A stretch of DNA of 64,000 bases, taken from positions 124,001 to 188,000 of IMG/VR virus record IMGVR_UViG_3300020186_000013. One strand, written 5' to 3'. A program made the translations under genes and the position numbers. Shown piece by piece: positions 16,507-21,772 of the stretch. The notes under the pieces were generated by a model. That model searched no databases. It was not told the DNA's origin and worked only from the letters and a program-made list of their open reading frames with translations. The first letter of the stretch is position 1; every line of letters begins with the position of its first letter.

Positions 16507-18255
16507 CTACTCCATGATGTGCACGGGAGTGTCCTCGGTGATCTCGCCCTGGTGGAGGGCCGCGAGGGCGTCCTGCTTGTTCCGGAAGACGCGGGGCCGA
16601 CCCTTCTCCTTCTTGGCCGTGCTGGCGTGGTGCAAACCGCCCAGGTACTCCTGGCCGGGCACGTGCACGGGGCTCTTGAAGTCGGCCGGGGATAGAAGGT
16701 TTTTCGACGGCAGCATCCGCTCCAGGGCCTCCTTCTTGGCCTCCTCGGAGGTCGGCACGTGGAACTGCATGGCGTCACCGTCGAAGTCAGCGTTGAACCC
16801 CTTGACGATCAGCGGGGACACCTGCATCGTGTCGCCCTTCACCAGCTTGGGGCGAAACGCCATGATACCGAATCGGTGGAGAACGGGTGCCCGATTGATG
16901 AACACCGGACGGTCTTCCATCTCCTCCTGGAGGATCGACCGGGCCTTGTCGGTCTTATCCTTGACGTGCTGGAGGGCCTGGCTGATCGGCATCCCCTGGC
17001 GGTGCATCCGCCGGACGAGGAACTTGGAGTACACCTCGAACGCCTTCGACTCGGGGATGCCTACCGTGTCCATGTCGTAGTCCGGGTTCGGGCTGATCAC
17101 CGCCCGGCCGACGTTGTCGACAGTCGAGGACAGGAGCTTCCTTTGCACCGTGCCGAACTTGGGGGACGTGCCGAAGATGCTCTTCAAGATGCCCTTGACG
17201 TTCTTGTCTTGGCTCTTCTGGGTGATCGGATCGCCCAGGCCGGTGACCGCCTTGAAGGCGTGGTACACGGCCAACCGTTCGGCCCCCGCGTTGTCGTGGC
17301 CGACCATGCCCTTCATCTCGCCGAGGTTCTTGTTGGCCTCGATCAGCTCCTTGTAGAGGTAGTTCGGGTCCGATACCAGCGGGATGCCCGACTGCCCCAT
17401 CATCGACACCGGGCGGAACGCAGGAGGCAGGACGGGGGCGTGATCGAGCATCCAGTCCTTGGGGTGCAGGCCGAGGCTCTGGGCACTCTTCAGGTAGCCG
17501 AGCTTGCGAACCGCCTCGTCCCGCTTACTACGACTCGACGACTGAACCTGGGTCCTAGCGGTCGCCAGCTCCTTGGTCAGGTTGATGTCCTCCAACGCGG
17601 CCTTGAGGGCCTTCGGGCCGGTGCCGTGCCCGCCAATCGTCTCAGTGCCCGCCAACACGCCCTCGAACTGCTTGGCCGTCAACCCGAGGATTCGCCGCAT
17701 CGGCTCCTCCATGACAGGGTTGGGCATGGGCTCGTCGAACTTAATCTTCGACCACTGCTTGCCGCCGTGCCCGCCGGTCATCGCCGGGTCGAACAGACCC
17801 CCGGCCACTGGCTTCAAGTCCCGGTCGAAGTTGACCGTCTCGCCGTGCGTAAGGACGCGGTTGCCGCCCAAGGCGTCCACGTCCTTGTTGGTCATGGCCA
17901 TGATGTGAGTGCGAGGGCCATCCCGGACGACATTGATCCCGGACGCCTTGAGCTGGTGGTGGAACTTGTCGTACACCATCGGGGTCTTCACAGCACTGGG
18001 CATATGTCCCTGCATGAACTGCAACCAGTATTGCTCGTTCCGCTGACCCCGGATACTGCCCACGTCCCGGAGATTCTCGACGGCCCCGTGGGACAGGAGG
18101 GCATTCACGTCGAGCATCGAGATCCGCTTGGAGTTCGACACCAGGACGTTGTTGGCGAAGTACAGGTGGATGCCGTCGACAGTGACGTCGTACACGTCGA
18201 CCAGCCCGTTCGCCTTCGTGACGCCCCGGTAAGGGCCGATGTACGCCACCTTCAT
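16507..18255 (-). CDS. C-intein (41 aa) + RNAP beta C-terminal tail + beta' N-terminal catalytic half
   Basis: VYDVTVDGIHLYFANNVLVSN|S (intein blocks F/G), SKRISMLDVNALLSHGA (beta [17 protein letters not shown] equivalent), GGLFDP, PVLPPAFRP, GRAVISP, NRAPVLHRFGIMAF, catalytic FNADFDGDAM. Confidence 0.95.
   Translation of the reverse strand: MKVAYIGPYRGVTKANGLVDVYDVTVDGIHLYFANNVLVSNSKRISMLDVNALLSHGAVENLRDVGSIRGQRNEQYWLQFMQGHMPSAVKTPMVYDKFHHQLKASGINVVRDGPRTHIMAMTNKDVDALGGNRVLTHGETVNFDRDLKPVAGGLFDPAMTGGHGGKQWSKIKFDEPMPNPVMEEPMRRILGLTAKQFEGVLAGTETIGGHGTGPKALKAALEDINLTKELATARTQVQSSSRSKRDEAVRKLGYLKSAQSLGLHPKDWMLDHAPVLPPAFRPVSMMGQSGIPLVSDPNYLYKELIEANKNLGEMKGMVGHDNAGAERLAVYHAFKAVTGLGDPITQKSQDKNVKGILKSIFGTSPKFGTVQRKLLSSTVDNVGRAVISPNPDYDMDTVGIPESKAFEVYSKFLVRRMHRQGMPISQALQHVKDKTDKARSILQEEMEDRPVFINRAPVLHRFGIMAFRPKLVKGDTMQVSPLIVKGFNADFDGDAMQFHVPTSEEAKKEALERMLPSKNLLSPADFKSPVHVPGQEYLGGLHHASTAKKEKGRPRVFRNKQDALAALHQGEITEDTPVHIME
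18133..18255 (-). mobile_element. Split intein, C-terminal fragment (IntC, 41 aa; ends Ser-Asn, Ser+1)
   Basis: Block F VYDVTV..H.YFAN and block G VLVSN; own ATG with a GAGGA RBS. Confidence 0.9.
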
Positions 18256-18656
18256 CGCTGCTTCCTCGTCCAGAAGTCGTGTAGGCCGGACAGGGCTTGG
18301 CCGGTCATGCCACGCAGCTTCATCATCAAACTCCGCTGCATGGCCCGACGGGGGTCGATGCTCTGGGGCGTGGCGGCTTCGACCGGGGCCGGCTTGGCTG
18401 CCGGCTTGGCCATCGGCTTACCCGGCCTCGCCCGCCGCCGGGGCGTGGGCTTCTCGGAAACCTCGCCGAACCTTTGGAACTTGACCGGGGCGAACGGTAA
18501 GTCGACCGGCGGACGGTTGCCCGCCGTCATGAGCGTCTGCTGGCCTGCCCCGAGGGGTGAGCCCGACTGCCCCTCGCCGGGGTCGGCCGGGTCGACGGCA
18601 GCCGTCTTCATGCGGAGAGCTGCCGCCTTGGCCGCGAGAATGTTGAGCCCGTCCAT
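18252..18656 (-). CDS. 134-aa low-complexity protein inserted between the two intein halves
   Basis: ATG at 18656 overlaps the beta stop (TGATG); its own TGA overlaps the IntC ATG (ATGA); AKAAA and MKTAA motifs; no endonuclease motif. Confidence 0.7.
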   Translation of the reverse strand: MDGLNILAAKAAALRMKTAAVDPADPGEGQSGSPLGAGQQTLMTAGNRPPVDLPFAPVKFQRFGEVSEKPTPRRRARPGKPMAKPAAKPAPVEAATPQSIDPRRAMQRSLMMKLRGMTGQALSGLHDFWTRKQR

Positions 18657-21600: not shown

Positions 21601-21772
21601 AAACCGGCTGAATGCCCTGAGCCGCCTTCAGGACGTTGCCGTAGATGTTCTGCCGCGTCTTGACGTGGTCGCCAAAGTCGCGGATGTGGGACTCCGGAAG
21701 CACGGGCGGCGGTGGCGGCGTGCTGCCGGGCAGGAGGGACGGACCCTTATCGGGGATGAGACTGTCAGGCAT
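18656..21772 (-). CDS. Phage RNA polymerase beta subunit (lacks its C-terminal tail) + N-intein
   Basis: RITRLGEGG, DPLRTPES, MASRMLTQALP, GYNFEDA, GDKLSGRYGDKGVI, LNPLGVISRTN and MKLHH are all beta signature equivalents; residues 940-1038 are intein. Confidence 0.95.
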   Translation of the reverse strand: MPDSLIPDKGPSLLPGSTPPPPPVLPESHIRDFGDHVKTRQNIYGNVLKAAQGIQPVSNVRHTLRLHSPEYIDPDHFSIDQRKQALLTGGTLARRMKGTWELTDNATGALVDRREQVIARVPHLTNMGTFVHGGNDYTLNHQQRLMPGVFTRRKDNGELESHANILPGKGVSHRYLLDPAKGVFKIKIGQAEMPLLPLLKAMGTTDRELYEHWGSELYQSNMLKSEGGVLTKLQNKILSKVDRDNPDEQHRRLALVKKFEDMEVDPEVTKYTLKHPHTRMNKDTILAATKKLLAVSRGEDEVDDRDAPHFQTVLGPEDLISERVARDHGRVQKMLFHKMSMKGHLKDMPSGALTRQIEQTLLGSGLGQAIEEINPAEVFDKQSRITRLGEGGIPSMESVPDDARSVQPGHMGFMDPLRTPESFRVGIDLNMARGARKGGDGRMYSEFRDVRTGRLGWKSPQDLAEAAIAFPGGLASTAKRIPVMKGGKIAYVPRNEVQFELPHFENAFSPLGNMVPLKSMVKGQRVAMASRMLTQALPLTNAEAPLVQSGLPGSGGARSFEEEYGRHLGAVHAGEHGGRVLGISDGGMDVQYADGRKDRVDLYHNFPFNRKTYIHNTPALKPGDTFKAGQLLAKSNYTDHTGAAALGANFRVAYTPWKGYNFEDAQVISETAAKRLSSDHMYHHEVMVDDKHKMGKKNFISLFPGKFDRETLASLDDDGIIKPGTKIEHGQPLILAARENDRADNKVHKKKQAGHNDQSVVWQHHDSGVVTDVVRGKDGPVVLVKSSSQMQVGDKLSGRYGDKGVISAVVPDHQMPHDRNGKPYEILLNPLGVISRTNPAQMVEAQLGKIAALTGKRYKLEDFGSIKDLNQFTIDELRKHGLTSTEDIVDPATGSKIPGVHTGNRFFMKLHHTAESKGQGRGGGGYGMDETPSKGGESGCFTERVFLHTESSGLVSIAEVVQKKLAINVLTKKATGGKLMWMPVVDWFTFAVKPIDIMEVVTDTGRVLEVTRNHEIILADGSRKLAGDLVVGDELQGA
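18659..18955 (-). mobile_element. Split intein, N-terminal fragment (IntN, 99 aa; Cys1)
   Basis: CFTERVFL (block A), G.VSIAEV, LEVTRNHEI (block B TxxH), ends AGDLVVGDEL followed shortly by the stop. Confidence 0.9.

Follow-up and report, generated by a model that had tools for sequence, protein, structure and literature searches.

A 64,000-nucleotide (nt) stretch of IMG/VR contig UViG_3300020186_000013 (208 kb), hereafter the window, very probably carries a functional, naturally split class-1 intein. It interrupts the fused beta-beta'N gene of a bacterial-type multisubunit RNA polymerase (RNAP) of a jumbo phage. The N-terminal intein half (IntN) ends one gene, the C-terminal half (IntC) opens another, and a further open reading frame (ORF) lies between them. 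The window is also found on a 215-kb microbial-mat metagenome contig.

Locus and intein halves

Three minus-strand ORFs abut without free space. ORF1 (18656-21772) encodes 1038 amino acids (aa), the intervening ORF (18252-18656) 134 aa, and ORF2 (16507-18255) 582 aa. Each is in a different frame and has its own start and stop. The intervening ORF shares bases with both neighbors, its ATG with the stop of ORF1 (TGATG) and its stop with the ATG of ORF2 (ATGA). GGGGG and GAGGA motifs lie upstream of the two internal starts, with GAGGA before the ORF2 ATG at 18255. GC content at third codon positions (GC3) is highest in the annotated frame, at 0.89 in IntN, a coding-type 0.86 in the intervening ORF and 0.95 in IntC, as in the exteins. 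An earlier note on this DNA, made from the letters alone, placed the two RNAP genes 400 nt apart. The distance is exactly 400 nt, but it is filled by the 134-aa ORF and is not an empty gap. No promoter-like sites were found in 16000-22500, and terminator-like sites there were no commoner than in shuffled sequences.

The N-extein is the RNAP beta-like part of ORF1, residues 1-939 (18956-21772, minus strand), which ends in PSKGGESG and is collinear with contiguous homologues. It matches Pfam Rpb2_6, Rpb2_3 and Rpb2_2 and NCBIfam rpoB, and the beta match ends at residue 926 (Pfam RNA_pol_Rpb2_6, E 9.5e-55). IntN follows as 99 aa (residues 940-1038, 18659-18955), starting with CFTERV, carrying VTRNH (T72/H75) and ending with GDELQGA before the stop codon at 18656-18658. 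IntC is the first 41 residues of ORF2 (18133-18255), with block F VYDVTV..H and block G VLVSN, in which Ser is penultimate and Asn terminal. After VLVSN the protein continues as SKRISMLDVNALLSHGA. This C-extein (541 aa, 16507-18132) opens with Ser+1, completes the C-terminal end of beta and passes into the N half of beta'. It matches Pfam Rpb1_2 and Rpb1_1 and NCBIfam rpoC/gamma, and holds NADFDGD at 16774-16794 (ORF2 residues 488-494). The predicted spliced chain is 939 + 541 = 1480 aa. These sequence features all agree with the earlier note, which had beta stopping at residue 939 and running into a 99-aa N-intein, a separate gene opening with a 41-aa C-intein and Ser+1, and a C-extein passing into beta' with NADFDGD to give a chain of this length.

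The halves have the features of a class-1 intein. The nucleophile Cys940 (Cys1) stands directly after GGESG, block B has TxxH (VTRNH), and blocks F and G are followed by a terminal Asn and then Ser+1. Among 28 N-halves, split and cis, C1, F2, T72 and H75 never vary. The same holds, among 13 C-halves (seven split and six cis alleles), for the Asp and His of block F, the terminal Ser-Asn and Ser+1. The first 18 residues of IntC carry a net charge of +3 and the second half of IntN one of -4, a complementarity that would fit association of the halves.

IntN and IntC were searched against PDB sequences with phmmer. The best 15 matches to IntN are all inteins, led by the Npu DnaE N-fragment (E = 0.002). 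Eight of the nine matches listed for IntC are inteins, and they align at or within a few residues of the intein C end. The hidden Markov models (HMMs) that the earlier note proposed to run on both fragments gave matches in the correct register, TIGR01445 and PF14890 to IntN, and TIGR01443 and positions 128-155 of 155 of PF14890 to IntC. The agreement of intein register and homologues is far beyond chance.

For the fold, the window IntN was modelled alone, and IntC was represented through the natural contiguous allele P0101. The AlphaFold2 (AF2) model of IntN, built from a 28-sequence alignment, has a predicted local distance difference test (pLDDT) score of 92.6. Its best Foldseek match is the Npu DnaE split-intein N chain 4lx3_A (template-modelling (TM) score 0.86/0.84, root-mean-square deviation 1.8 Å). 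The P0101 model is a full HINT domain (pLDDT 91.2), and its top Foldseek matches are all inteins (Mtu RecA, Npu DnaE, NrdJ-1, gp41-1).

Intein-free, contiguous and split alleles

A search with ORF2 gave 80 related viral loci (79 besides the window's own contig), mostly on contigs of 100-230 kb. In all but four lineages the matches to ORF2 begin only at residue 40-42. When the loci are mapped to the predicted spliced protein, a single ORF of 1458-1499 aa passes uninterrupted through the insertion site in about 65 contigs. The cultured Salmonella phage Arash has a contiguous 1525-aa gene adjoining the portal gene. In the closest intein-free relative (L007), the junction GGESG-SKRISMLDVNALLSHGA is identical to that predicted for the window. 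L007 aligns across the junction to bacterial beta (PDB 8x6f_C), which places the site inside a highly conserved beta segment and bears out the proposal that joining G939 to Ser+1 restores that segment. The insertion is in frame, at a conserved site, and absent from these homologues.

Contiguous inteins at exactly the same site, KGGxxG/C...VSN/SK (splice points marked by slashes), were found in a metagenome scan with the IntN alignment. Six of them (L084-L089) are 370-385 aa long and contain a LAGLIDADG_2 domain (E 6e-19). Another three (P0101, P0118 and P0143), from the profile search described below, are mini-inteins of 147-163 aa. Both kinds are 31-36% identical to the window type in IntN and 37-52% in IntC. 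They differ in having the LAGLIDADG_2 domain or a short linker within one ORF, and their splicing would accordingly be in cis. IntN and IntC of the window tile P0101 from its first to its last residue, at 36% and 45% identity, with only about 10 linker residues absent. In an alignment with the LAGLIDADG and mini alleles, the break falls between blocks B and F, in the loop where the endonuclease is inserted. The survey of relatives proposed in the earlier note therefore yields both intein-free and contiguous alleles.

An exhaustive profile search gave 980 matches, and clusters (50% identity) were counted among the best 150 of these. Sixteen clusters are RNAP beta proteins that end with an IntN at this site, and a further 12 have a contiguous intein here, three of which are the mini-inteins. 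The sixteenth split cluster, P0001, matches the L005-type allele. Split alleles thus occur in at least 19 lineages, namely the window, L003, L004, L005/6 and 15 clusters. The halves keep their original locus and orientation in the window, L003, L004, L005 and L090-L092. All split IntNs stop 10 or fewer residues after GDDLxE. They are 22-42% identical overall, and the exteins about 60%. The N-half tree places 18 of 19 split alleles in a single group apart from the cis alleles (support 94/92). The split state, with the same break, has been kept by selection across these lineages. The window intein is not a one-off but a member of a sizeable family in uncultured jumbo phages. The split IntN of P0035 (L092 5001-9608) has an atypical composition and is placed among the contiguous alleles. 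Splitting may have happened a second time, independently, in this lineage, or the placement may be an artefact of the tree.

In this jumbo-phage clade, inteins have a hot spot in the beta-beta'N gene. At least six to eight sites are occupied, near residues 400, 440, 617-650, 797, 837, 916, 940, 1267 and 1392 of the spliced reference. Examples are L005, L025-L029, L037, L057, L063, L073, L081 and L084-L089. A single ORF holds up to four or five inteins, as in the 2907-aa ORF of L084 and the 2940-aa ORF of L088. In L091 the C-extein gene (10334-13642, 1102 aa) has a further contiguous LAGLIDADG intein in its beta' part, so one RNAP chain would need trans- plus cis-splicing. Two different phages have a cis intein at another site, GDKM/SGRYG, and in both the extein frame breaks at one spot, five codons past the intein. 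The break consists of an in-frame TGA with an additional Gly codon in L009 (~5819), L069 (~6579) and L008 (~814), and of a 4-nt TGAA insertion with a +1 frame shift in L024 (~7580). No start codon is available there for a separate C fragment. The cause may be recoding, a scar of endonuclease repair, or decay to a pseudogene.

Proposed splicing mechanism

In the proposed mechanism, beta(1-939)-IntN, the 134-aa protein and IntC-Ser-beta(C end)-beta'N would be made from co-oriented, translationally coupled genes. After translation, IntN and IntC would associate into one HINT domain. Cys1 would undergo an N-S acyl shift to a thioester, Ser+1 would attack the thioester in a trans-esterification, the terminal Asn41 would cyclise, and an O-N shift would leave a native peptide bond. 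These steps are established class-1 intein chemistry. The predicted product, 1480 aa of beta-beta'N, would contain both double-psi barrels and the junction GGESG-SKRISMLD, as in intein-free relatives. Since the insertion is in a conserved, active-site-proximal beta segment, a retained intein is probably incompatible with function. Transcription by this RNAP would then depend on trans-splicing and, as the earlier note suggested, may be gated by it. The split form probably arose from a contiguous LAGLIDADG intein at the same site, with the break exactly at the position of the endonuclease domain.

Intervening gene

Intervening genes are found between the halves in most split lineages and are translationally coupled on both sides, with overlaps of the stop and start codons of their neighbors. 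The protein is 134 aa in the window, 637 aa in L003 (6091-8004), 95 aa in L004 (7717-8001) and 128 aa in L090 (9350-9736). Paired genes are present in L091 (9421-10334; 201 + 98 aa, duplicated) and L092 (9605-10070; 56 + 110 aa). L005/6 have none, so the gene is probably not required for splicing.

The intervening proteins of the window, L003, L004, L090, L091 and L092 are related to one another with pairwise E-values of 4e-7 to 1e-2. What they share is a helix-like motif at the N terminus, L-x-x-x-A-A-A-L-R-x-K, and a second motif at the C terminus, F-W-x-R-x-x-x-(R/K)-Y. Between the two, the sequence varies and is rich in Pro and Ala, and the proteins are mostly disordered. Pfam, PHROGs and Atlas searches with the window 134-aa and L003 637-aa proteins returned nothing usable, and the Atlas models of the two are of low confidence (pLDDT 0.56 and 0.41). 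No homologues were found near the RNAP gene of intein-free relatives. The gene was also considered as a decayed LAGLIDADG domain, and this was rejected at the level of sequence, as the protein has no similarity to the cis-allele domain (best E 0.077). A role as a functional third component and not a passenger, acting as co-translated chaperone, inhibitor or timer of IntN-IntC association or RNAP assembly, is unlikely. If the gene does regulate, RNAP maturation by trans-splicing would be a regulated step of infection.

Alternative explanations

The scores of the individual HMM matches weigh against a functional split intein, as they fall under curated cut-offs (E 0.01-0.05). The case therefore rests on register, homologues and fold. 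It is also conceivable that the split is only apparent, with a contiguous cis intein restored by translational recoding or an intron, or hidden by an assembly error. Indels are possible in high-GC metagenome assemblies, and group I introns are known from the literature often to interrupt phage genes. However, contigs of four microbial-mat runs over 17900-19200 have no insertion or deletion, and two of them span the whole stretch singly. The only variant is A>G at 18329, which leaves a Leu of the intervening ORF unchanged (TTG>CTG, synonymous). A contiguous ORF, which according to the earlier note would refute the split if read data showed it, does not appear in these contigs. The runs are of different samples, although their independence is partial because they may include the source sample. 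The same architecture recurs in unrelated, independent assemblies (L003, L004, L005/6 and L090-L092). In L005/6 the halves are only 31 nt apart with a ribosome-binding site in the spacer, which is too short for an intron and excludes read-through there. An Rfam search of 16000-22500 at a permissive threshold found no intron or other match. The three ORFs in three frames with overlapping stop and start codons, and an intervening frame with coding GC3 and conserved protein ends, also argue for separate genes. An apparent split is accordingly hardly credible.

An intein may also be decaying, with the RNAP gene broken through loss of the endonuclease domain and left as a pseudogene. Oddly broken beta genes do occur in other relatives, such as L009 and L024 near another intein, and these inteins evolve faster than their exteins. 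Yet the break point, the start and stop arrangement and the catalytic residues are kept in many diverged phages, the exteins are intact and full length, and codon-position GC is as in real genes. No second beta/beta'N copy was found in the window, nor within 8 kb of the gene in relatives. This makes decay highly improbable. The halves might instead bind tightly without splicing, so that the intein pair is a non-covalent clamp for RNAP fragments. Split-intein halves bind with high affinity, as established for DnaE inteins. In bacteria, beta and beta' are in any case two chains, and the phage already tolerates a beta' split without an intein. Such a clamp is nevertheless very unlikely. Despite the low IntN identity, about 19 split lineages keep Cys1, T72/H75, the Asp and His of block F, the terminal Asn and Ser+1 without exception, which is expected only if the splicing chemistry is used. 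A 140-aa domain retained in a highly conserved beta segment would probably be disruptive.

Neighboring genes

The C half of beta' is encoded by a separate minus-strand gene (10565-14422, 1285 aa) that matches Pfam Rpb1_5 and NCBIfam rpoC / rpoC2_cyan over residues 4-482. Its unassigned tail of about 800 aa is in large part Pro/Ala-rich and of low complexity. The gene encodes a partner subunit outside the intein system. Across 10565-18255 (minus strand), beta' has an intein-free break whose position matches that of cyanobacterial rpoC1/rpoC2. The beta' halves are separated by two genes, one for a Pro/Gly-repeat protein (15684-16436) and one at 14487-15416. In more distant relatives (~33% identity), L078 (5235-11480) and L080 (5223-11441), beta and the whole of beta' form one chain of about 2080 aa. 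The window also codes for a head-decoration-like protein and a ribonucleotide reductase (RNR; 26104-28449, 781 aa), and the PHROG match of the latter shows no sign of an intein. The RNR gene upstream of the RNAP cluster in L092 (1-1435) holds a LAGLIDADG-bearing intein, and the same upstream gene is present at L091 1-66.

Known systems and significance

The Npu/Ssp DnaE split intein is similar in being class 1 with Cys1, in its split at the endonuclease-insertion loop, and in its sizes (IntN ~100 aa, IntC 36-41 aa). Npu DnaE is both the best structural and the best sequence match of the window IntN. DnaE inteins also end in SN, with a non-His penultimate residue, as IntC of the window does. 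The host protein is DNA polymerase III alpha in DnaE and an RNAP beta-beta' fusion here, and the +1 residue is Cys in DnaE and Ser here. The DnaE halves are encoded at distant loci, whereas those of the window are adjacent in one operon, and identity is only about 20%.

Fractured genes from marine phage metagenomes, including gp41-1, gp41-8, NrdJ-1, IMPDH-1 and NrdA-2, were described by Dassa et al. 2009 (PMC2677866). Like the window locus, these are phage-borne and broken in place, with order and orientation kept and a gene between the halves. The gp41-7 fractured locus has no middle gene, like L005/L006 (PMC2677866). The middle gene of fractured genes is a GIY-YIG or Vsr-like homing endonuclease (PMC2677866), but that of the window encodes a conserved, mostly disordered protein with no endonuclease signature. 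The window locus is a fractured-gene-like three-gene module in which no free-standing homing endonuclease lies between the halves. Phage genes already known to hold split inteins encode helicase, RNR, IMPDH, DnaE, ligase and terminase, and the eight fractured host types are DNA-synthesis or repair enzymes and terminase, with no RNA polymerase among them (PMC2677866).

Cis inteins are known in RNAP subunits, in archaeal RpoA and in eukaryotic and viral RPB2/RPA2/RPC2 (Goodwin et al. 2006, PMC1635734; Novikova et al. 2016, PMC4760082). These also lie in conserved active-site-proximal segments, and the second-largest subunit is a recurrent target. They differ in being contiguous and in occurring in archaea, eukaryotes and eukaryotic viruses, not phages. 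The word "split" is absent from PMC1635734. The earlier note knew of no split intein in a multisubunit RNAP. None was found in the open-access full-text papers and bioRxiv preprints searched, and these hold no description of the intein-rich RNAP of this clade. As host of a natural split intein, RNAP is real and conserved, and it appears not to have been reported before.

This would be the first multisubunit RNAP with a catalytic chain made by protein trans-splicing. Natural split inteins, known from enzymes of replication, nucleotide metabolism and packaging, would then reach into the transcription machinery as well. One site in these phages is found in all states, empty, occupied by an intein with an endonuclease, occupied by a mini-intein, split with a middle gene and split without one. 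The clade is thus a natural system for the origin and maintenance of split inteins, and its roughly 20 diverged Cys1/Ser+1 split pairs are candidate orthogonal protein-ligation tools.

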